The position numbers and the translations under genes are program-made. Below are positions 5,720-62,923 of a DNA stretch of 64,000 bases, piece after piece. Below the pieces are notes generated by a model. That model ran no database searches, was not told where the DNA came from, and saw nothing but the letters and a program-made list of their open reading frames with translations. The DNA lies in the IMG/VR virus record IMGVR_UViG_3300029893_000001, positions 62,001-126,000 of that record; one strand, written 5' to 3'. Within the stretch, counting starts at the first letter, position 1; each line of letters begins with the position of its first letter.

Positions 5720-6678
5720 TTACCAGCTCCCAAGTATGCTTCCACCACATCTCGGACTCGCATCCAGTCCAAGCCACTGCCGAATTCACGATCCGAACCA
5801 CCAATGATGTCGGACCCATTCCAACTGACCTCCCGCTCGACAAGACGACGAGTGTCGTCCTCTATGAAAGCAGGAGGCTCTGCCTTGGACAACTCACGAT
5901 AGAGTTCTGGCACAGGAAAATCGATGTACCTAGAACGCCTTCCTATCGTGTATACGTAGCGACCGTCTGGACGCTGAGCTACGACACTAATGTAGCCGTC
6001 GAGTAGCCCCTGAGAAAACAGGGTGTACCGAGCCTCGTTACCCCCAATCTCGTTTACGATCTTGAACCGAGGCGAAGCATGCAGGATCTCGTATCGAGAA
6101 TCGAGGGACTTCTCTCCTGCCTGCCCAAGCAGAGCCGCATTCAGGTTCTCCATAACTGCCTGAATGCAGTTTCGAATAACCGTCTCGTCGGCGCGGGCAA
6201 GTGCACCTGACTTTCGAAGGTCAGTATACGGGCTGAAGATCCAACAATGCTGGCGGACGAGTGAGTCGTCAAGACTCATTGGATACGCCCCACCTGTAAT
6301 GTCCCAACGATCGTTTAGGGCCAACAGGCGACTAATAACAGGGTGGCTCTGTACTCCCGAAAACTGTTTGTGGTGCATCAGCAACCAAACAGCAAGGGCG
6401 GTATCTTGATCGGCGTCGTTGACATAAATGAAGCAACGATTGCCCATCCTATCCATGAGCCCGCCTTTGATAGCGAACATCACCTGCATAGCAGTGGACA
6501 TTGTCGCTTCACGAACGACGCCCTCATGATGATCAAAATTGACGTGAAGGGTCTTTTCGTCCCAAGCAGGCCCGCCGCGAACAACCCCGTCCAGCGCAAT
6601 AGAGCGTTGAGGAGTTAGGAGAACAAACTCCTCCCACGTAATCGACTGGCGAGGAAGAACTCTAATCTCGATACTCAT
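5716..6678 (-). CDS. DHH-like phosphoesterase
   Basis: IALDG, NFDHH and NDADQD motifs; start probably 6678. Confidence 0.55.
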   Translation of the reverse strand: MSIEIRVLPRQSITWEEFVLLTPQRSIALDGVVRGGPAWDEKTLHVNFDHHEGVVREATMSTAMQVMFAIKGGLMDRMGNRCFIYVNDADQDTALAVWLLMHHKQFSGVQSHPVISRLLALNDRWDITGGAYPMSLDDSLVRQHCWIFSPYTDLRKSGALARADETVIRNCIQAVMENLNAALLGQAGEKSLDSRYEILHASPRFKIVNEIGGNEARYTLFSQGLLDGYISVVAQRPDGRYVYTIGRRSRYIDFPVPELYRELSKAEPPAFIEDDTRRLVEREVSWNGSDIIGGSDREFGSGLDWMRVRDVVEAYLGAGK

Positions 6679-11344: not shown

Positions 11345-11474
11345 TGGGCAGGGAGGGAGTTGAACCCTCCTAGGCGGACCGTCGTCCTATTGGCCTCCAA
11401 GGATCACCCAGGAGTCGAACCTGGCCGGGGACCACCCCACGCTGGAATTGAACCAGCTACCTTCCACTCTGCCC
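11345..11474 (-). ncRNA. tRNA-like RNA with three tandem T-loop hairpins
   Basis: GGGCAG/CTGCCC closing stem; GCTGG-TTCAATT-CCAGC, CCAGG-TTCGACT-CCTGG, GGAGGG-TTCAACT-CCCTCC. Confidence 0.7.
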
Positions 11475-35219: not shown

Positions 35220-35349
35220 GCAGCGACAGGAAGTAAAGAGACTTGTTTTGTTTAGCTACTAGCCTTTTGGGCCGGTGGGACTTGAACCCACATTGAGAGA
35301 ATTTTGGTCTCTTGCTTTATCCGATGTAGTCCCTTTGAGCATTCGCTGC
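35220..35349 (-). ncRNA. Y RNA-like 1 (permuted tRNA-like module)
   Basis: GCAGCGAATG...GACTACA...T-arm GTGGG-TTCAAGT-CCCAC...CCTGTCGCTGC. Confidence 0.8.
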
Positions 35350-35716: not shown

Positions 35717-35878
35717 GAAAATCGGCGCCCGTTAGGCTCTAATAGGGCGCCTCCGTCTTTTTCAGAGCCATACGGTCAGGATACCTGACCTTCAAAGACG
35801 TAGAGTCCCAGTTACACCAGCTTTGGTAGCTAGCTTGCTAAGCTACCGAGGTAGCTGTTGCGGAGGAACTCAGAAAAG

Positions 35879-36013
35879 TGCGACAACAGGAATTGGAGAG
35901 TGAGTTTTTCGCGTGCAACCCTTACACTTCCCCCGGATACATTCCAGGGGCCAGGACTCGAACCTGGTCCTCGTCCTCCCAATGGATGTACACCCTCCGG
36001 GGCATTTGTCGCA
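35879..36013 (-). ncRNA. Y RNA-like 4
   Basis: TGCGACAAATG...CCAGG-TTCGAGT-CCTGG...CCTGTTGTCGCA. Confidence 0.78.
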
Positions 36014-39592: not shown

Positions 39593-40255
39593 CTAACAAT
39601 CTTTGTACGCTAAAAAGTCTCTGGCAAACCGCTCTGGGTCGATTCTTTCGTCTGCAGCGAAATCATCACGAGAAAGCTCAGGATTAGCCTCAAATGTAGT
39701 TGAATGGTCAACTACGACCCCCCGAACCGGCTTCTTCTTAAGCGCCGTAACTAGCTGCACGTATGAGCTATTTCTTTGGCTAGGAGAAGAACAAGTAAAA
39801 ACGAATCGTGACAGGCTCTCGGCCTTCTTAATTAGTCGATCTGCCTCTGGTGTGAGCCAGTCAATCTCATCAATGAAAACAGCATCGAATCTGATAGACG
39901 TGTCATCTTCTAGAAACTTCCGTACTGAGTACGTATGAAAGCAAGCGGGCAAGTCCGACAAAGAAAGTGGTGCCACATGTAGTTTGAGGGGAGTGAAGAA
40001 ACATGCATTTACCTGGGTCGCCGCGCCTACTACAGCAATCTGGTGTGTCTTCCATGGGTCTAGACCCAGAAAATCTAGACAGATGATGGGCGCAAGATGC
40101 GTCTTTCCAGCCCTCTGTCCCCACAACACATGAACTGAACTGGCCTTACGTGCTAGTCGCCTGATTTCAAGCTGTCTGTCCCGAAGACCCAAGTCATTCG
40201 ACAGAAATCCATTGAGACCGGCGTGCAAGAATGTGTCGCTGGGATTAGTAGTCAT
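39593..40255 (-). CDS. stand-alone terminase-like P-loop ATPase domain
   Basis: WGQRAGKT, FIDEID, SSP, TFEANP. Confidence 0.6.
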   Translation of the reverse strand: MTTNPSDTFLHAGLNGFLSNDLGLRDRQLEIRRLARKASSVHVLWGQRAGKTHLAPIICLDFLGLDPWKTHQIAVVGAATQVNACFFTPLKLHVAPLSLSDLPACFHTYSVRKFLEDDTSIRFDAVFIDEIDWLTPEADRLIKKAESLSRFVFTCSSPSQRNSSYVQLVTALKKKPVRGVVVDHSTTFEANPELSRDDFAADERIDPERFARDFLAYKDC

Positions 40256-40806
40256 CTATCTAGCTTTCTAAACGTTAGGGAGATACGTCCGCCGCAAGGT
40301 TCTGAGTGCTTGGGGATCTTGTGGAAATGATTATCCTGATACCCACCAGGCATGATGAAAACGGATCCCTTGGTAAGAAGGAACTTGTCTTCTTCGGGAA
40401 TGTTGCCCTTAAAAGACTTCTCCTTTACATAGATATACCTCTCCGCACCAAACGACACCACCGCAATGGGATGGCTGAGATCCTGTTCTGGGCTGTCATC
40501 TGCGTGCCAACCAAGGTGCTGATGCTGCCCCTGGTAGTAGTTCAACACACAGACATTGTACTGGCATCCGAATTCAGCGTTCAGGCGCTCTAGGATGCGC
40601 AAGACAGCAGGATGCATCGGCACTGCGTGATACGTATGGAGGGCCTCCCTCAGAGAATTATTGTTCCCGTAACTGTACGATAAGCTCGTGTCAAGAGCCA
40701 TGAAGCATTCGTCACGAGGAGACGAGCGGTTTGTCCACGGAACGTTTTGACGAAGCTCTTCAAAAAGATCCTGGGGCTCATACCCAGGAATGAACTCGGG
40801 TCGCAT
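40252..40806 (-). CDS. AlkB-family 2OG-Fe(II) dioxygenase
   Basis: LNYY...GWHAD...HKIPK...RISLTFR. Confidence 0.9.
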   Translation of the reverse strand: MRPEFIPGYEPQDLFEELRQNVPWTNRSSPRDECFMALDTSLSYSYGNNNSLREALHTYHAVPMHPAVLRILERLNAEFGCQYNVCVLNYYQGQHQHLGWHADDSPEQDLSHPIAVVSFGAERYIYVKEKSFKGNIPEEDKFLLTKGSVFIMPGGYQDNHFHKIPKHSEPCGGRISLTFRKLDR

Positions 40807-42083: not shown

Positions 42084-42524
42084 TCAGTACTCGTAATAGC
42101 CCTTGTCGAGACGCATTTCAATTCCGCAGAACTTAAGGATTTCTAAGTTCCGCTCTTCATGCGTAAGAGCAGAAAAAGCATCCCACACAGAATTCCAATC
42201 CTTTTGTCGGTCCTCTCGACGAAAACTATTAGGGAGATGGTCCCGCTCCAACGAAAGCAAGGTCTCGTATGGAAGTCCTGGATACGTCGGAGGCCGAATG
42301 ACGCTCATCCCTAAAGCGAAGCCAAAATGGGAAGTCCCCATTCTGGCAGCAAATCCCTCTTTCCGTACGAGGGATTTTACCTTACGCCACTCCCAAGGAG
42401 TTAGTGGACGCGCCAAAATATGGCCCTCAACACGTCGGCTGTGCCGACCATGCATCTGGCTATATGAATGAGACTTCCAGATTTTCTCGTTGAGACTTTT
42501 GAGGTAAGATGCTGCGTCTGCCAT
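42084..42524 (-). CDS. hypothetical protein
   Basis: ORF within gene run. Confidence 0.5.
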   Translation of the reverse strand: MADAASYLKSLNEKIWKSHSYSQMHGRHSRRVEGHILARPLTPWEWRKVKSLVRKEGFAARMGTSHFGFALGMSVIRPPTYPGLPYETLLSLERDHLPNSFRREDRQKDWNSVWDAFSALTHEERNLEILKFCGIEMRLDKGYYEY

Positions 42525-42536
42525 CGAAAACTCTAA

Positions 42537-42640
42537 ACCCACACCCAGGAGTCGAACCTGACCTCCACAGTTTCGTAACAACGGTCCTAAGGCTCGCGGC
42601 CCGGTCCAGTGCGTTGTGGAGTCCCCCTCGGGAGTGTGGG
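42537..42640 (-). ncRNA. tRNA-framed RNA with about 45-nt insert replacing the anticodon loop
   Basis: CCCACAC/GTGTGGG acceptor, CTCCACA/TGTGGAG stem, TCAGG-TTCGACT-CCTGG T-arm. Confidence 0.65.
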
Positions 42641-42646
42641 ATTATC

Positions 42647-43267
42647 TCATAGATACTGTTCGGCCTTATCACCGTGAAGTGCCTTGACGCGATCAATCCA
42701 CGCCTGATTCTTCACCTTGAACATCGTGGGTGCCTCCCACTTTTTACTGAGTGGGGCCTTAGCCACGACACCCTCGAACGTCATCCCTTCCAAGGAGCCG
42801 TTGCGAATTTGCTCCTCTAGTTCCTTGTTGAAATTGCCACGGTGCAGCAACGCTGGGATGTCTACGACGCCATCGAACAAGCGCAAAAACTCGCGCGTGT
42901 CGAGCAGGCCCTGCTTGTGCACATGCACGTCGATCAGGGTCACCTTATGCGGTTCTACCTGATGTAGGCCAGCGAACGAATTCGGTCCCCAAAACTCGAA
43001 AAAGCAAACAACCTGCTGCCACCGCTCGCTTTGAAAGGCTTTGGCCAGGGCTTCTTCGAGCTGCTTAACCAAATCAATAGACTCTGCGAGTAGCGTCTGC
43101 TGGTCTGTCTCGCCTCGCTGGCCCAACAGCACCTTCCTGCTGCCGAACTTGTAGAAGCCCTGCTTCTTACTCCACTCCGCTCGGATATTCGAGCCGTCAA
43201 TCTTGTCGAAGACATAGTAGGGACCGCCGTACTGGACGGTCCTGGAAATCGAGGGGTACTGCTTCAT
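42647..43267 (-). CDS. RNA ligase-like nucleotidyltransferase (Rnl2-type)
   Basis: KIDGSN, FEFWG, EGVV, FKVKN. Confidence 0.75.
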   Translation of the reverse strand: MKQYPSISRTVQYGGPYYVFDKIDGSNIRAEWSKKQGFYKFGSRKVLLGQRGETDQQTLLAESIDLVKQLEEALAKAFQSERWQQVVCFFEFWGPNSFAGLHQVEPHKVTLIDVHVHKQGLLDTREFLRLFDGVVDIPALLHRGNFNKELEEQIRNGSLEGMTFEGVVAKAPLSKKWEAPTMFKVKNQAWIDRVKALHGDKAEQYL

Positions 43268-43638
43268 GTTTTCATTAGCTCGGGATCCCCGCTCAACTCC
43301 TCATCCGTGAAAAGCATGAGTTGAGGATCGTCTTCTTGTTCAAAGTCGAGACCGCTATAGTCAGTCTCCCGCGGAGGAATGACCAACGTCTCACAGAACT
43401 CATCCCAACATGGCTCACAAATGTCTATCTGCTGACGTGTAAGATCCTTCTTGGAATAGAATCCCCAGCACTTGTCAACAGTGACGCACTCCATTGAGCC
43501 AATGTCTGGACTGCCCATAAAGGAAAGCCCATAATGATTCTGCGGTACTGTTGAAATGGACTTGCCGCACTTATTGCAGATGATATCATCAATGATGATG
43601 ACTTCATTCGTCTCGATTTCCTTATGTGTCTTTAGCAT
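43264..43638 (-). CDS. zinc-finger hypothetical protein
   Basis: CNKCGK...DICEPCW. Confidence 0.6.
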   Translation of the reverse strand: MLKTHKEIETNEVIIIDDIICNKCGKSISTVPQNHYGLSFMGSPDIGSMECVTVDKCWGFYSKKDLTRQQIDICEPCWDEFCETLVIPPRETDYSGLDFEQEDDPQLMLFTDEELSGDPELMKT

Positions 43639-43653
43639 TACCAAGCCCTCGCA

Positions 43654-43725
43654 CGCCTGCGGTGGGGATCGAACCCACGACATAGGGATTTAGAATCCCA
43701 CGTTCTACCACTGAACTACGCAGGC
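43654..43725 (-). tRNA. amber suppressor tRNA (anticodon CTA)
   Basis: Canonical cloverleaf; GGGA-TTCTAAA-TCCC. Confidence 0.88.
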
Positions 43726-43748
43726 AAACGGCACCAAGTTCTGGTGCC

Positions 43749-47440: not shown

Positions 47441-47481
47441 GTCGACGATGCTTGAACTCCAAACTAACGCTTTAAGTTGGA

Positions 47482-47612
47482 GCGCTGACAGGAGGTGTGA
47501 GGACCAGCTTCTTTTGCTCTACCAACTGAGCTACCCCTCCACACAACGGAGGGGGTTGGACTCGAACCAACGACACAAAGATTTACAATGTAGTCCTCAC
47601 TGCATTCAGCGC
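47482..47612 (-). ncRNA. Y RNA-like 5
   Basis: GCGCTGAATG...GACTACA, T-arm, looped acceptor CCCCTCC/GGAGGGG, D-arm AGCTCAGTTGGTAGAGC...CCTGTCAGCGC. Confidence 0.85.
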
Positions 47613-54730: not shown

Positions 54731-55339
54731 TTAGTGAAGTGATCGATTCTTTCGATTCTGAAAGGCTTCGTACTGCTTCTGGGCAAAAAGTTTGCCCTCC
54801 GCAGTCGTTGCCCAGAAACCATTCTCGCCGCACACCCAAAAGCGGCCCCTACCATGATGCTCGCAGCGATGGCATGTAGTGCCAGCCAGATGCCATTCGT
54901 CCGAAAATTCGCGGTAGCCCCAACTCAGGCCGTGCCGATGAGCTAATGAATTCATGCATCGCTCGCACGTCTCTGCTGCAAGCAGGACAGCCATTTCAAA
55001 GTCGTACGTCTTCGCAAATGACCCATATCTCAGAAACTGAATTGTGCGGTCCCTTAGGGTAGGCCGGCACATTGCGAGCACGAGATCAGAACTGTACGAC
55101 GATGTAGCTGAAGCTATAAGCTCACAGCCACCATCATCTTTCAAGCGCAACCACTTGGTGTGAACTTCTCGTGGAAAACGACTGACCTGAATGGTCGCCC
55201 CGCTCGGCGCACCCTGCCACGGTTCTGTGGTGGCTGGGATATACTCGCCTTCATCGTTTTCGTACCAAATGCGCTCAAATCTAAATGCCATTTCTAAGCC
55301 CCGCTGAAAAGAATTAGACGACAGGTGGTGCAGAGACAT
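54731..55339 (-). CDS. hypothetical protein
   Basis: CERC...CHRC; true start probably MAFRFE. Confidence 0.55.
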   Translation of the reverse strand: MSLHHLSSNSFQRGLEMAFRFERIWYENDEGEYIPATTEPWQGAPSGATIQVSRFPREVHTKWLRLKDDGGCELIASATSSYSSDLVLAMCRPTLRDRTIQFLRYGSFAKTYDFEMAVLLAAETCERCMNSLAHRHGLSWGYREFSDEWHLAGTTCHRCEHHGRGRFWVCGENGFWATTAEGKLFAQKQYEAFQNRKNRSLH

Positions 55340-55458
55340 TTACCGCTACGTCTGCCAATTTCGCCATACAGCTCCTAGGAGCTGCACCCGGACTCGAACC
55401 GGGACGCCACGTGGGCCGCGGTTTCTTTGTAGATGTAGTCTCTACGGCATTCGTCTAA
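55314..55458 (-). ncRNA. Y RNA-like 7 (Leu-type class II mimic)
   Basis: GACGAATG...variable arm, T-arm, looped acceptor, D-arm TGGCGAAATTGGCAGACG...CCTGTCGTC. Confidence 0.85.
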
Positions 55459-56800: not shown

Positions 56801-56859
56801 TTCTTGTTGCCCCATGTCTTCGTTTGCTGATGACGTGGCACAACGCACTGTTTTACAAA

Positions 56860-57080
56860 CGTCCACAGCGGGATTCGAACCCGCACCACTTGAACCAAGC
56901 CTTCTTGTTAGGAAACGCGCTTCCGTAGCGACCCGGGTCCTCCGTGCCATTCCGTGCATCCGCAACCTTTGAAGGCGCCCCACACCCCTACTTTGCAATC
57001 TTCGAGTAGCAGGTGTTCTCAGTGCCTTTTACGGCCATCGGCTCCGTTTTTCCGACGCTCTGCCCTTGAGCTATGTGGAC
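56860..57080 (-). ncRNA. 221-nt tRNA-framed RNA with about 170-nt insert at the anticodon arm
   Basis: GTCCACA/TGTGGAC acceptor, GCTC-AAGGGCA-GAGC D-arm, GCGGG-TTCGAAT-CCCGC T-arm. Confidence 0.75.
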
Positions 57081-57563
57081 AAAACTTTGTGTGTTCCCTC
57101 TATTGGCGTACCCTCGTGTTTGAGAGTGGCAATTTGGGCATAGAAATCGTAAGTTATTCGGACGATTGTCGGCCCAATCGCCGTTCTTATGATCGATCTC
57201 AAGAATCAACGGTTGCCTGTTCCATTCAACCAGCAAACACTTCTCACATTCATACTTTCGTCCTGACTCAATCAAAGCACGACGAAGTATACGCGACTTT
57301 TGCCTTTTATCAGCAGCAGATTTAACGAGTCGTTCTTGCCAAGATTTCTTCTGCGGACCACCACGATGGTGAGATCCTGAATTAGACGCCTTGCCCAGAA
57401 AGTGAGTTGTGTCTAATCCAAAACGTTTGATGGTCCTCGATAAGTGTGTAGATATACTACCAGTCTGGCGCTTACCCAATTTTCTGAGTACTTCGGCAAC
57501 TGAGATACTATCTTTTACGAGAGGCTCCAGAAGCTCTCTGGTGTATTTTGTGTACGCTCGCAT
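56988..57563 (-). CDS. HNH homing endonuclease
   Basis: CEKC...LEIDHKNGD..DNR..NLRFLCPNCHSQT. Confidence 0.9.
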   Translation of the reverse strand: MRAYTKYTRELLEPLVKDSISVAEVLRKLGKRQTGSISTHLSRTIKRFGLDTTHFLGKASNSGSHHRGGPQKKSWQERLVKSAADKRQKSRILRRALIESGRKYECEKCLLVEWNRQPLILEIDHKNGDWADNRPNNLRFLCPNCHSQTRGYANRGNTQSFVHIAQGQSVGKTEPMAVKGTENTCYSKIAK

Positions 57564-58335: not shown

Positions 58336-58343
58336 AAAAAGAA

Positions 58344-58475
58344 GCACTGACAGGAATTGGAGTGACATTTGGAGCCAATTGCTCTACCCCTGAGCTACCA
58401 GTCATCCAGGATGACTGGGCGGGACTCGAACCCGCGACCTACTGGTTAGATGTAGTCATCTCCGGCATTCAGTGC
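58344..58475 (-). ncRNA. Y RNA-like 9
   Basis: GCACTGAATG...GACTACA, T-arm, CCAGTCAT/ATGACTGG, D-arm...CCTGTCAGTGC. Confidence 0.85.
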
Positions 58476-60658: not shown

Positions 60659-62923
60659 TCACTCAGCAGCTTCTGCTGCTTCCAAACTCACGACAAGCTT
60701 CTTTGCTTCCTGATAGGTTGCAACAGCCGTCGAAATCTCGTGCTGAATTGCAATGTTACAGAGATGGTACTCCACAGAACGATTAAGGTCTTCGGGGGTT
60801 ACCTGAACACCGTAAGACTGAAGTCTGTTGTGGAGATAGGTACGCCTCTTTGCGTCGAATTTCTCGATGCTAAAGACCAAACGGTCTCCGTTTTCATCCC
60901 GGTTCAGCTCCTCAACTAGCTTCTTCGCTTCGTCCGGCTGCTTTCGAACGAAAGTGGTCATTTTCTCACGCCACACGTGATCGACCACCTTTCGAATGAC
61001 ATCACCCGTAGCGCCTTCGAGCCTCCTGGCTGGAAGATCGAAATCGGAGTCCGAATTCACCACAACCGGAAGAAACGAGGAGAAGTGCTTCAGTAGCTTA
61101 ACACGGTCTGCTTGGGTCAACTCTCCGACAATCAACACCTTGTTGAACCGCCGAATCATCGGCATCGGAATTCGACCAGGATGGTTCGTGGCACCCCAAA
61201 CAGACAGTTGGGGATAGCGAACAATACCGTCCATCAAGATCTGGAATTCAGTCGTAAGGTTCACGCCACCGAATGATCGGTAGCCTTCATCCTTCTTGAG
61301 GACCGCATCAATCTCGTCGATGAGAATGTGCACGTGCTTCTTAGACGACTTCTGAATCTTGAGGGCACCCTCGAACAGACGCTTCGGATTCTTCTCCGCC
61401 TCGCCCAACCAACACGTCAAGAAATCAGACCCTTGCGCGAACACGCCCACAGACTTCTTATCGCCACCAACCGCTCGAAGAATTTCACTCTTTCCACATC
61501 CCTGAGGACCGATGAGCAGGACATTGCTCTTGTCAGCCGACCTAGACGGTGAAGTCGCCATGAACAAGTCATGGAAGGCGGCAGAAGACTCAATCTGGTT
61601 GATGAAATCCTTCACTTCGTTGAACCCGGAACCTACGATTTCCTCCAGGTTGACCACCGGGCGTTCGCCTGGAACGATCTGAAGACCTCCAGGAGCATCA
61701 CCCAAAAAGCTGTTCCCGCTGCCAATATGACAGGTGAAGAAAGTGTTTTCGCCTTCGTAGTAGTTCCGCAGTTCTGACTTACGGCTCAAAACGTACTGAA
61801 CTACTTCCTTAGCCGTTGCGCCTGCCGTAAGTAGACCTGCTACAGTAGCGATGGTCTCATTTTTGAATGCGATGGCGAACCGCTCCTCTGCAGTAAGAAT
61901 CCCTTCCTTCTCTTTGTACGAGACACGATTTGGATCCAAATCCGAAATGAAATCAAGTGCTCGCTCGAAATCGAACAAAGTCGGAGAATTCTTAGGAGTT
62001 ACCTTCCGCAGAACCGCGTAGACAGGACCACGAAGCGGATCTACAAAAGCCCGGATTTGCTTCGAAAGCTCCCAAAGCGCCTGAAACCGGGATTTCACGA
62101 ATTCGATGAGAGCCTGTGGCTTCTGAATGAAGCCCTGAATAATGCCCTCTTGCATAGTCCTAATCATCAATTCGGCCTTCCGAATTGAGTACGCACTCAC
62201 CTCGTCTGGCGCCTTCCCGTCTGCGATTTCCCCATGCGCGTCTACGTTCTGATAGATCGAAAGGGCGAGGTCCGTTACAATCGGCGTCACGTGAATCTCA
62301 TACCCATCCACCGAATGACGCTTCACGAGTGTGTTGTAGTAGCTATCCAGAGCGTCAGTAACCAGGTACGCCAGATTCGTCAGATTCTGAGGAAGTGCCT
62401 CCAACTCCAAAACAGCGCCCACGAACCGACTCACTGCTTCAGCGTTGAACTGAATCTCCACCATTGCACGCTGGAGATTATCGGGATCGAACAAGTCCCG
62501 ATTACGGTCCTTCTTGGGACACAAGAGAAGCTCGCCGGGAGTCAGCCGTTCCACAGCCTCACGAATACGATGAATGCCGTCCTGCATGCCGCCCATGATT
62601 GAAATCACAAGGCGAATGAAGTTGTTACCAGTCACCGCCGACAATTCCGAAAACGGATCGCTATCGAACTCCTGTGTCGATGCGAATGGATTCCGCCTGC
62701 GCTGCGAGTTATGCAACTCTTCAGTAAGAGCCCTCCCCAACTGCTTGAGGGTGTGTACGTCATCGTCGAAATCATCGACGGTCTTATTGAGAACGATGCT
62801 AATGTCCTCAAGCTGAGGGCCGAGTTCACCGTTCGTCAACAAGCCTTGCATCAGGTCTGCAAGAGCGTAAAAATCGGTGGGACGAATGTGGACCGTGCTC
62901 GGATCTTTCAAGTTCTGAAGCAT
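60659..62923 (-). CDS. AAA+ ATPase with long N-terminal region
   Basis: GPQGCGKS, IDEIDA, GATN, RRF. Confidence 0.9.
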   Translation of the reverse strand: MLQNLKDPSTVHIRPTDFYALADLMQGLLTNGELGPQLEDISIVLNKTVDDFDDDVHTLKQLGRALTEELHNSQRRRNPFASTQEFDSDPFSELSAVTGNNFIRLVISIMGGMQDGIHRIREAVERLTPGELLLCPKKDRNRDLFDPDNLQRAMVEIQFNAEAVSRFVGAVLELEALPQNLTNLAYLVTDALDSYYNTLVKRHSVDGYEIHVTPIVTDLALSIYQNVDAHGEIADGKAPDEVSAYSIRKAELMIRTMQEGIIQGFIQKPQALIEFVKSRFQALWELSKQIRAFVDPLRGPVYAVLRKVTPKNSPTLFDFERALDFISDLDPNRVSYKEKEGILTAEERFAIAFKNETIATVAGLLTAGATAKEVVQYVLSRKSELRNYYEGENTFFTCHIGSGNSFLGDAPGGLQIVPGERPVVNLEEIVGSGFNEVKDFINQIESSAAFHDLFMATSPSRSADKSNVLLIGPQGCGKSEILRAVGGDKKSVGVFAQGSDFLTCWLGEAEKNPKRLFEGALKIQKSSKKHVHILIDEIDAVLKKDEGYRSFGGVNLTTEFQILMDGIVRYPQLSVWGATNHPGRIPMPMIRRFNKVLIVGELTQADRVKLLKHFSSFLPVVVNSDSDFDLPARRLEGATGDVIRKVVDHVWREKMTTFVRKQPDEAKKLVEELNRDENGDRLVFSIEKFDAKRRTYLHNRLQSYGVQVTPEDLNRSVEYHLCNIAIQHEISTAVATYQEAKKLVVSLEAAEAAE

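Follow-up and report, generated by a model that had tools for sequence, protein, structure and literature searches.

A conserved tRNA-shaped RNA of a giant phage carries an antisense to helix 69 of 23S ribosomal RNA

Next to an RNA ligase gene, the giant phage represented by IMG/VR record IMGVR_UViG_3300029893_000001 encodes a conserved tRNA-shaped RNA whose enlarged "anticodon loop" is complementary to helix 69 (H69) of bacterial 23S ribosomal RNA, and which may therefore be a natural guide RNA aimed at the ribosome. The element was examined within a window of 64,000 nt (positions 62,001 to 126,000 of the record; coordinates below are those of the window). The original prediction, made from the sequence alone, described an RNA with a 7-bp acceptor stem, a mini D hairpin, a 7-bp stem at the anticodon position around an insert of roughly 45 nt and a T arm, starting 6 nt after the stop codon of an Rnl2-like ligase gene, and proposed that it was a ligase substrate with a spliced intron-like insert, a cofactor RNA or a decoy. 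The observation is confirmed in our analysis: anatomy, position and ligase family are all as described. The interpretation is only partly supported, since the intron-like substrate reading finds no support and the decoy has no specific support, while the cofactor RNA survives in a more concrete form. The features of the locus are collected in the table.

Features of the tRNA-shaped element and its neighbourhood. Cells are alignment cells over 8 non-redundant sequences; handles beginning with L denote loci in related giant-phage contigs.
Coordinates	Strand	Feature	Observations
42537..42640	-	Whole tRNA-shaped RNA (103 nt plus discriminator U at 42537)	No CCA is encoded, as for all 44 tRNAs of this phage; supported by constrained folding, homologs and covariation
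42634..42640	-	Acceptor stem, 5' strand; pairs with 42538-42544 and starts with C1-G72	7 Watson-Crick pairs; C1-G72 is swapped to G1-C72 in L042 and L049; 52/52 cells paired
42622..42633	-	Mini D hairpin, 4 bp with a 4-nt loop ending in a GG pair, like G18-G19 of tRNA	3-4 pair types per column; 28/28 cells paired; a GG dinucleotide is kept in the loop of all nine sequences
42615..42621	-	Anticodon-position stem, 5' strand; 7 bp with 42563-42569	The six junction-proximal pairs covary, with five different stem sequences among the homologs; 47/48 cells paired
42570..42614	-	45-nt loop (insert) of the anticodon-position arm; a variable 5' part with a small G+C hairpin is followed by the invariant block	27-52 nt long among homologs; no conserved intramolecular partner for the block, whose mean unpaired probability is 0.31-0.50
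42580..42592	-	Invariant 13-nt block, perfectly antisense to E. coli 23S rRNA 1918-1930 (3' strand of helix 69 plus the next six nt)	Local BLAST against rrlB of NC_000913.3; present in all nine elements (13, 13, 13, 13, 12, 13, 12, 12, 13 nt)
42574..42579	-	Invariant 6-nt block, antisense to 23S rRNA 1909-1914 (5' side of the helix 69 loop plus two stem pairs)	Abuts the 13-mer in the window; in relatives 0-3 nt intervene, opposite 1915-1917; in L042 and L049 the 3-nt spacer can pair through G.U, U-A and G.U, giving 21-23 continuous pairs
42545..42561	-	T arm, 5-bp stem and 7-nt loop of tRNA consensus (UUCGACU)	40/40 cells paired; the third pair has four pair types
42538..42544	-	Acceptor stem, 3' strand	As for the 5' strand
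42647..43267	-	206-aa RNA ligase consisting of the nucleotidyltransferase domain only; motif I is KIDGSN, and motifs III, IV (EGVVAK) and V (KVK) are present	PF09414 30 bits; phrog_548 1.4e-14, covering positions 4-238 of 341; the model of ortholog P0005 (pLDDT 92.9) matches T4 Rnl2, T. brucei REL1, MthRnl and NgrRnl best
43264..43683	-	139-aa zinc-ribbon protein (CxxC...CxxC); its stop overlaps the ligase start	Co-conserved directly upstream of the ligase in the window, L014, L040, L042, L045, L048, L053 and L056; no Pfam family above cut-off
42084..42524	-	146-aa ORF downstream of the RNA, no family assignment; the RNA ends 13 nt before its ATG (42524)	Homologous only to the ORF after the RNA in L040 and L045; other relatives have unrelated ORFs there
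40252..40806	-	AlkB-like 2OG-Fe(II) oxygenase, conserved 0.2-2 kb downstream of the ligase in relatives	PF13532 2e-22; same family in L040, L042, L045, L048, L049 and L053

A single linker G separates the anticodon-position stem from the T arm. With acceptor and T arm constrained, ViennaRNA returns exactly the predicted fold at -41.7 kcal/mol, against an unconstrained optimum of -43.8 kcal/mol. From this one sequence alone the case is weak. The MFE z-score of -1.25 is not significant, a search of Rfam returned only noise at E<=10, including no hit to the tRNA model RF00005, and ARAGORN in default mode is silent. Its intron mode gives a tRNA-Pro(agg) with a 21-nt intron at these coordinates, but the call is not reproduced on the excised piece and the intron position is not canonical, and it was rejected as a model. 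Searches with the DNA itself were equally unproductive: the 3-kb region containing the element found nothing by megablast in the phage collection, the element found nothing in three related giant-phage records, and an exact 26-mer found nothing in viral contigs. No element was seen downstream of distant relatives of the ligase (<=52% identity).

The case becomes strong with eight homologous elements from related giant-phage contigs, which were reached through the ligase of one relative, L014. Linkage to the ligase in relatives had been named in advance as a test of the original prediction, and it holds: all nine known copies lie 4-645 nt downstream of the orthologous ligase on the same strand, six of them within 43 nt, while ORFs on either side come and go. 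Covariation supports all four helices over the 8 non-redundant sequences. Of 20,000 column shuffles, 2, 0, 0 and 106 reach the observed pairing of the acceptor, D, anticodon-position and T helices, respectively, although the alignment was made by hand and the sequences are related, so that these counts are not strict probabilities. Neither a covariance-model search of public collections nor an Rfam search of the relatives' elements was part of this analysis. Linkage is not strict in the other direction. Six loci whose ligases are only 62-70% identical lack the RNA, and a ligase of the same family occurs without it in XacN1, whose whole genome, when scanned, has no anti-H69 block; the ligase therefore does not need the RNA.

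The element shares with tRNA the acceptor stem and a 5-bp T stem with a 7-nt loop that fits the consensus UUCRANY. It departs from tRNA in the D loop, which is of 3-5 nt instead of 7-11 nt, and in the anticodon arm, where a 6-7-bp stem replaces the 5-bp stem and 7-nt loop. No excision restores a 7-nt anticodon loop. The insert carries the only invariant sequence of the family, and removing it leaves a stem with no anticodon loop. No bulge-helix-bulge motif, splicing endonuclease motif or group I features were seen.

The invariant block is complementary to ribosomal RNA. Together, its 13-nt and 6-nt parts are antisense to sequences that flank the tip of H69. A 20-nt block matches either strand of the E. 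coli rRNAs over 13 nt with a probability of about 9e-4, and we estimate that the collinear 6-mer adds a further factor of about 1e-3. About 40 chance 13-mer matches to rRNA occur genome-wide, so the argument rests on this 13-mer being the invariant block. Predicted duplexes with the target are -28 to -43 kcal/mol, against -8.3 kcal/mol for the H69 hairpin alone. The variable spacer lies opposite 1915-1917, where m3-pseudouridine 1915 cannot pair. H69 is one of the most conserved rRNA elements in bacteria, although 23S sequences from other phyla were not compared here and conservation of the site across bacteria rests on general knowledge. A 9-nt complementarity to 16S rRNA 1495-1503, next to the colicin E3 site, was seen repeatedly but was judged too short and is largely a by-product of the CGUAAC shared by h44 and H69; two copies of a 16S 13-mer in the genome lie in coding or ribosome-binding-site context and were dismissed; and the other tRNA-framed orphans of this genome show no rRNA antisense above chance.

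The neighbouring gene encodes an Rnl2-type ligase by motifs, Pfam and PHROG profiles and predicted fold. Residues K22, D24, G25, N27, E91, E165, G166, K170, K184 and K186 are invariant in 32 homologs. The structural model of ortholog P0005 has Foldseek top hits 2hvr, 1xdn and 1s68, with E from 4e-8 to 4e-7, and so resembles nick-sealing ligases most closely; the window protein itself was not folded, and a sequence search of PDB with a ligase profile gave nothing useful. The protein lacks the C-terminal domain required by T4 Rnl2 for adenylate transfer at a nick, and sealing of 3'-OH/5'-PO4 nicks in duplex RNA was not assayed. Modelling of a complex between the ligase and its zinc-ribbon neighbour gave no verdict and speaks neither for nor against binding. 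The genome carries a broader RNA-repair toolkit: three further PF09414 hits (one a weak hit in a 372-aa frame that we take for the ATP-dependent DNA ligase), an AAA_33 kinase, the AlkB-like oxygenase, a TROVE/Ro60-like protein with several Y-like RNAs, and a CCA-adding enzyme.

What the comparisons show is a conserved tRNA-like top half, made of acceptor stem, T arm and mini D hairpin, and a stem in place of the anticodon arm whose large loop presents an invariant, apparently unpaired stretch antisense to the two sides of the H69 tip; that it is the gene of a real conserved RNA family appears very likely to us, and that the RNA is aimed at H69 more likely than not. The remainder is inference. 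The RNA would be a stable, trans-acting species, cut from the ligase transcript by RNase P and RNase Z and given CCA by the phage's own CCA-adding enzyme, like the phage's tRNAs, and would base-pair with H69 of host 23S rRNA. The most likely use of that pairing is as a guide or splint, holding the two sides of a broken H69 loop in a duplex so that the co-transcribed nick-sealing ligase, perhaps with its zinc-ribbon partner, can reseal it. This would be phage counter-defence by RNA-guided ribosome repair, a reading to which we give a probability of only about 0.35. Precedents exist for its parts: H69 is a nuclease target (PMC13189344), cleaved rRNA can be repaired in bacteria by PrfH-RtcB2 (PMC9304027), and jumbo-phage ligase paralogs have been proposed to repair different RNase damage (PMC7824862). 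Several points count against it. There are no transcript or processing data, since every sequencing run holding this DNA is a DNA run, and no nuclease that cuts bacterial H69 during phage infection was found in the literature examined. With a 0-2-nt spacer, as in the window, 1915-1917 would bulge out, and a nick inside a bulge is a poor substrate for known Rnl2 enzymes. In mature ribosomes the target is partly base-paired and lies at the subunit interface. Adjacency also carries little weight, since the region holds about one tRNA gene per 2 kb and two other ligase genes of this phage are also followed by tRNAs.

The same antisense block, predicted accessibility and duplex energies are also compatible with an H69 blocker, which we consider possible but less likely. 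In this view the processed RNA binds free 50S subunits or vacant ribosomes as a deacylated tRNA would and its loop invades H69, removing intersubunit bridge B2a, so that ribosomes are silenced, split or parked (host shut-off, timing control or exclusion of competitors) without any part for the ligase. The conserved tRNA-like elbow and acceptor fit docking to the ribosome or to tRNA enzymes, and the 6-nt arm sits immediately 5' of the 3' strand of the anticodon-position stem, which by inference is where, in a ribosome-bound tRNA, the H69 loop (A1913) touches the A-site tRNA. The occurrence of the ligase family without the RNA also suggests that the two may be independent. However, the phage depends on the same ribosomes and no way of sparing phage translation is apparent, nothing shows that a naked RNA can open H69 in an assembled subunit, and a blocker does not explain why the RNA has stayed beside the ligase cassette in nine lineages while neighbouring ORFs changed. 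Somewhat more doubtful is a degenerate tRNA kept as a cis-acting processing or stability signal, RNase P/Z "punctuation" that defines the 3' end of the ligase mRNA and the 5' end of the next one, the rRNA complementarity having no function. The helices conserve the parts that RNase P and RNase Z recognise, the element fills the intergenic gap almost exactly in the window, L048 and L052, phage tRNA regions are transcribed as polycistrons, and chance 13-mer matches are common. Yet a punctuation signal needs no invariant 19-nt loop sequence, whereas that block is the most conserved part while the helices drift, the bipartite, collinear match has a chance probability near 1e-6, and in L014, L049 and L056 the element is not at the ligase 3' end.

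An adaptor for the phage Ro60/Y-RNA machinery appears improbable. Such an RNA would be a second kind of tRNA-mimicking RNA directing Ro60-exonuclease complexes, or the AlkB-like oxygenase, to 23S rRNA for decay, trimming or demodification around m3-pseudouridine 1915. Bacterial Ro60 is linked to rRNA decay and maturation in work of the Wolin laboratory, the genome encodes a Ro60-like protein and YrlA-like RNAs, and an AlkB-like gene is conserved near the ligase in most loci; in L053 both Ro60 and an AlkB-like gene lie within 3 kb of the ligase. However, L053, the locus with Ro60 closest to the ligase, lacks the element. Least likely of all is the principal idea of the original prediction, an intron-containing tRNA or other ligase substrate whose insert is excised and whose halves are rejoined by the neighbouring ligase, or whose insert is circularised. 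Apart from the adjacent ligase, only the unstable ARAGORN call favours it, and the phage already has tRNAs for all 20 amino acids.

The element has partial parallels among known RNAs. Like tmRNA (SsrA), which this phage also encodes and which acts on the ribosome, it builds from its two ends a tRNA-like frame with an acceptor stem, a T arm and a reduced D region around a large insert that carries the functional module. It is only about 105 nt long, however, has no pseudoknots, is not called as tmRNA by ARAGORN or Rfam, and its insert carries an rRNA antisense rather than an mRNA-like segment; C3-G70 is present in 8 of 9 sequences (including the window) and the G.U pair of alanine identity in none, and no conserved frame ending in a stop was seen. 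YrlA RNAs (RF02553) are tRNA-mimicking non-coding RNAs found in phages and linked to RNA repair or decay loci, and true YrlA-like hits in the same window score 55-62 bits. YrlA is circularly permuted, its ends lying in the Ro-binding helix and its acceptor being closed by a loop, whereas here the order is unpermuted, with an open acceptor and a closed anticodon arm, no Ro-binding motif is present, and the YrlA model gives no hit even at E<=10. In kinetoplastids, REL1, an Rnl2-family nick-sealing ligase, acts on breaks held in a duplex by a trans-acting guide RNA whose arms flank a few unpaired target nucleotides; the organisms, guide architecture and target (mitochondrial mRNA) differ, no editing endonuclease or exonuclease was identified here, and the functional link between RNA and ligase is inferred only from gene order.

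C/D and H/ACA sRNAs also carry 10-21 nt of antisense to conserved rRNA sites, and one C/D guide lies inside the archaeal tRNA-Trp intron, in the anticodon region of a tRNA gene. No C (RUGAUGA), D (CUGA) or ACA boxes are conserved in the nine sequences, the context is that of a bacterial phage, no fibrillarin or Cbf5 partners are known here, and the guide part is not an excised intron. Repair of PrrC-cut tRNA-Lys by phage T4 Rnl1/Pnk and of colicin-E3-cut 16S rRNA by bacterial PrfH-RtcB2 (PMC9304027) likewise reseal a specific break in the translation apparatus, but these systems use proteins alone to find the break, with no guide RNA involved, and the sites are an anticodon loop and 16S A1493/G1494, not H69. 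A full-text literature search found no precedent for a tRNA-like RNA complementary to 23S rRNA.

The in vivo role of phage Rnl2-type nick-sealing ligases has been open since T4 Rnl2 was described: such enzymes need a duplex, yet no natural splint is known outside trypanosome RNA editing. Here a conserved RNA beside such a ligase carries a 19-23-nt antisense to a functionally central rRNA element, intersubunit bridge B2a next to the decoding centre, which turns the question into a direct experiment with one RNA, one ligase and one rRNA site. If giant phages do carry an RNA-guided ribosome repair (or ribosome-editing) module, in which a tRNA-shaped guide made by the tRNA processing machinery programmes the ligase to reseal H69, a possibility that is not excluded but that we regard as unlikely rather than likely, this would be the first natural guide or substrate assigned to a phage Rnl2-type ligase and the first rRNA-directed guide RNA in the bacterial world. 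The family also shows that tRNA finders and Rfam miss conserved tRNA-framed RNAs in giant-phage tRNA islands. If the link to the ligase fails, a tRNA-shaped RNA aimed at helix 69 would still be a new way for a virus to act on the ribosome, and a natural design for tRNA-scaffolded antisense RNAs.

The window covers bases 62001-126000 of a virus record of 392,328 bp which is rated complete. ARAGORN identifies 44 tRNA genes and a tmRNA in the genome, all on the - strand, with 28 of the tRNAs located in the window. The nearest named relatives of the ligase gene are from uncultured phages of 485-642 kb, Xanthomonas phage XacN1 and the Lak phages, and sequencing runs which contain the DNA are subsurface and rock metagenomes. 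The region is therefore the tRNA island of a giant phage. None of the 44 tRNA genes encodes the 3' CCA, and the phage has its own CCA-adding enzyme (PF01743, 1.5e-36). The tmRNA has an unusually long 26-residue tag. The coordinates of the element and of the other features considered here are collected in the table below.

Coordinates of the element, its neighbours and other features (window positions unless a locus or the genome record, C1, is named; L numbers denote contigs of relatives carrying the ligase)
Feature	Position	Strand	Remark
tRNA-framed element	42640-42538	-	
Discriminator	42537	-	
Ligase ORF	42647-43267	-	
ATG following the element	42524	-	
3' arm of the invariant block, complementary to 16S rRNA 1495-1503	42574-42582	-	
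AlkB-like oxygenase gene	40252-40806		
tRNA with anticodon CUA	43653-43726; L014 2248-2322	- (window)	two genes upstream of the ligase
YrlA-like (Y RNA-like) RNAs	47479-47612, 58341-58475, 55312-55457 and 35877-36012	-	27-62 bits against a gathering score of 69
Further orphan T arms	near 35268 and 58268		
Further site listed with the YrlA-like RNAs and orphan T arms	C1:126816 (window frame 64816)		outside the window
TROVE/Ro60-like frame	C1:96199-96387 (window about 34.2 kb)		560 aa
tRNA-framed element with a large insert	56859-57081	-	223 nt
Three tandem T-arm-like hairpins	11346-11457	-	just downstream of an ORF
10-codon mini-ORF	L040 5624-5656, and the matching positions in L045 and L042		between ligase stop and RNA
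Recurrent motif	L048 about 1870-1895; L049 about 1340-1365; L042 about 5765-5800; C1 near 126.9 kb and 128.7 kb		
CCA-adding enzyme gene	C1:13073-13444		
tmRNA	C1:130644-131041		outside the window

The element occupies the 121-nt gap between the ligase stop and the next ATG. It includes seven Watson-Crick acceptor pairs, a 4-bp hairpin with a 4-nt loop, a 7-bp stem around a 45-nt loop, one linker nucleotide and a 5-bp T stem with a loop of tRNA consensus. The anatomy described in the original prediction is thus present: with only the acceptor and T arm imposed, ViennaRNA returns the predicted fold at -41.7 kcal/mol, against -43.8 for the free optimum. Taken alone, the sequence is not compelling. 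Its z-score is -1.25, an Rfam search is blank at E<=10, and ARAGORN is silent in default mode, while its intron mode gives a tRNA-Pro(agg) call which disappears when the excised piece is analysed. Transcription had been proposed beforehand as a test, but no RNA run contains the stretch and there is no expression evidence. The case for the element therefore depends on its relatives.

Ligase homologs of 52% identity or less showed no element downstream. Neither did two closer ones, in the loci L014 (77%) and L015 (70%), directly after the stop. A generic scan for a T arm followed by a strand able to pair with an upstream 7-mer then revealed a copy in L014, which has the same acceptor and lies 645 nt downstream of the ligase, behind an inserted 145-aa ORF. 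We used the L014 ligase as the protein query and examined contigs of its closest relatives, which provided further copies (see the table of distances). Relatives were reached through the ligase only, without a covariance-model search of public collections. Linkage to the ligase in relatives had been put forward as a condition that the original prediction should satisfy, and all copies indeed lie on the ligase strand. Every locus with a ligase at least 73% identical to that of L014 has the RNA. Of seven loci at 62-70% identity, one has it (L056) and six do not within the DNA examined (L015, L043, L044, L051, L053/54 and L055). XacN1, scanned whole, lacks it. In three lineages (L040, L045 and L042), a conserved 10-codon mini-ORF (M-x-E/K-K-I/T-R/K-T-G-P/G-I/A-stop), absent from the window, lies between the ligase stop and the RNA. 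A recurrent motif close to GAACCCUGNCGAUAGUAG appears just downstream of the RNA in relatives and upstream of other small RNAs in this genome, and may be a phage promoter or processing signal.

Distance of further copies of the RNA from the ligase stop
Locus	Distance (nt)	Note
L040/L041	40	
L045-L047	43	
L042	41	
L048	8	
L052	4	short form with a 27-nt loop
L049/L050	326	
L056	423	

In a structural alignment made by hand, the stem at the anticodon (AC) position takes five unrelated sequences, all of which pair. The D hairpin shows three or four pair types at every position and its loop contains a GG pair in every copy. The first acceptor pair flips from C-G to G-C and the third T pair has four pair types. 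Counts over 8 non-redundant sequences are given below; they should be read with the relatedness of the sequences and the manual nature of the alignment in mind. The tRNA top half, including the elbow contacts, is thus under selection. As for all 44 tRNAs of the phage, no copy encodes CCA and the discriminator varies.

Pairing in the four helices over 8 non-redundant sequences
Helix	Cells paired	Shuffles (of 20,000) reaching this
Acceptor	52/52	2
D	28/28	0
AC	47/48	0
T	40/40	106

The loop varies from 27 to 52 nt and usually contains a small G+C hairpin of changing sequence. Its 3' part is invariant and is composed of a 12-13-nt block, then 0-3 variable nt and then a 6-nt block that abuts the stem. 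This rules out an intron, because the insert is the conserved part and no anticodon arm can be restored. The interpretation attached to the original prediction, in which the RNA would be a ligase substrate with a spliced intron-like insert, a cofactor RNA or a decoy, is only partly supported. The block resembles the reverse complement of 23S rRNA around helix 69 (H69), and this was examined by comparison with rrlB of E. coli K-12. All nine elements are perfectly antisense to 1918-1930 (12-13 nt), which is the 3' strand of H69 and the six nt following it, and the 6-nt block is antisense to 1909-1914. In L042 and L049 the 3-nt spacer can pair with 1915-1917 through G.U, U-A and G.U, giving 21-23 continuous pairs.

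A 20-nt block matches either strand of the E. coli rRNAs over 13 nt in about 9 of 10,000 shuffles, and we estimate that the collinear 6-mer adds roughly another 1e-3. Since about 40 chance 13-mers occur genome-wide, the weight of the argument lies in this being the invariant block of the family. Predicted duplexes are of -28 to -43 kcal/mol, against -8.3 for the H69 hairpin, and the block has no conserved partner within the RNA. The 3' arm of the block is also complementary to 16S rRNA 1495-1503 (9 nt in the window, 8 nt in most relatives), directly 3' of the colicin E3 cleavage site, but this match arises from the CGUAAC shared by h44 and H69 and was judged too short to weigh. The eukaryotic version of the H69 site differs, so the match is to the bacterial ribosome.

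The ligase carries motifs I, III, IV and V, with a weak PF09414 hit and a phrog_548 hit over the nucleotidyltransferase part only. A confident model of the ortholog P0005 (pLDDT 92.9) matches T4 Rnl2 on a nicked duplex, T. brucei REL1, MthRnl and Naegleria NgrRnl best; the ligase of the window itself was not folded. These are mostly duplex nick-sealing enzymes. The stop of a zinc-ribbon ORF overlaps the ligase start and this ORF travels with the ligase in eight loci; a structure prediction of the complex gave no verdict on whether the two proteins associate. Two genes upstream of the ligase is a tRNA with anticodon CUA (amber suppressor, labelled tRNA-Pyl by ARAGORN), conserved in L014; whether the phage reads UAG as sense was not examined. 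The ORFs after the RNA differ between lineages, and ORFs have been inserted between the ligase and the RNA three times. An AlkB-like oxygenase follows within 0.2-2 kb in most loci.

Elsewhere, the genome includes three more PF09414 hits, one of them weak and probably the ATP-dependent DNA ligase, and an AAA_33 kinase; it has no RtcB. It also includes a TROVE/Ro60-like gene and several YrlA-like RNAs, an unusually large Y-RNA complement for one phage. Most of the orphan T arms are preceded by a GAAUGC...GACUACA motif which we take for the Ro-binding helix. Another tRNA-framed element, of 223 nt, has a perfect 7-bp acceptor and normal D and T arms but about 126-150 nt inserted in the anticodon/variable region. 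ARAGORN in intron mode calls it a tRNA with a 126-128-nt intron; it shows no rRNA antisense above chance and its nature is unknown. Finally, three T-arm-like hairpins lie in tandem, one of which shares 21 of 22 nt with the T arm/acceptor of the element studied here. ARAGORN in intron mode joins one of them to a 5' half 2.4 kb away as a tRNA-Thr with a 2378-nt intron. These may be tRNA fragments or another tRNA-like RNA.

What the analysis establishes is a new conserved tRNA-framed RNA family whose loop displays an antisense to both sides of the H69 tip and which is kept beside an Rnl2-type ligase cassette; that the RNA undergoes ordinary tRNA-type processing and pairs with 23S rRNA is our inference. 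The use we consider most likely is as a splint or guide for the ligase at a damaged H69. Rnl2-type enzymes need a duplexed nick and REL1 uses guide RNAs. H69 is a known nuclease target, in eukaryotic ribosomes (PMC13189344), rRNA repair exists in bacteria (PMC9304027), and jumbo-phage ligase paralogs have been proposed to be specialised for different damage (PMC7824862). Several points weaken this view: no H69-cutting defence nuclease is known from the literature examined, 1915-1917 would bulge out in the version present in the window, the ligase occurs without the RNA in some lineages, and adjacency to a tRNA-like gene carries little weight in a tRNA island. The main alternative is an H69-occluding antisense RNA that docks like a tRNA. 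A purely cis-acting processing element is less likely, because it would not need an invariant loop, while an adaptor for Ro60 or AlkB is possible but unsupported.

The element does not satisfy the criteria which define tRNA, intron-containing tRNA, tmRNA, YrlA or C/D guides. In architecture it is closest to tmRNA, a tRNA-like frame with a functional insert, and in proposed action to kinetoplastid guide RNA with REL1. Rfam 15 has no such family and the literature searched provided no precedent. Both tRNA-like non-coding RNAs and rRNA-directed antisense RNAs are already known, and what is shown here is a variant of these. The role as a guide for the ligase, if true, would be categorically new for phages and bacteria.
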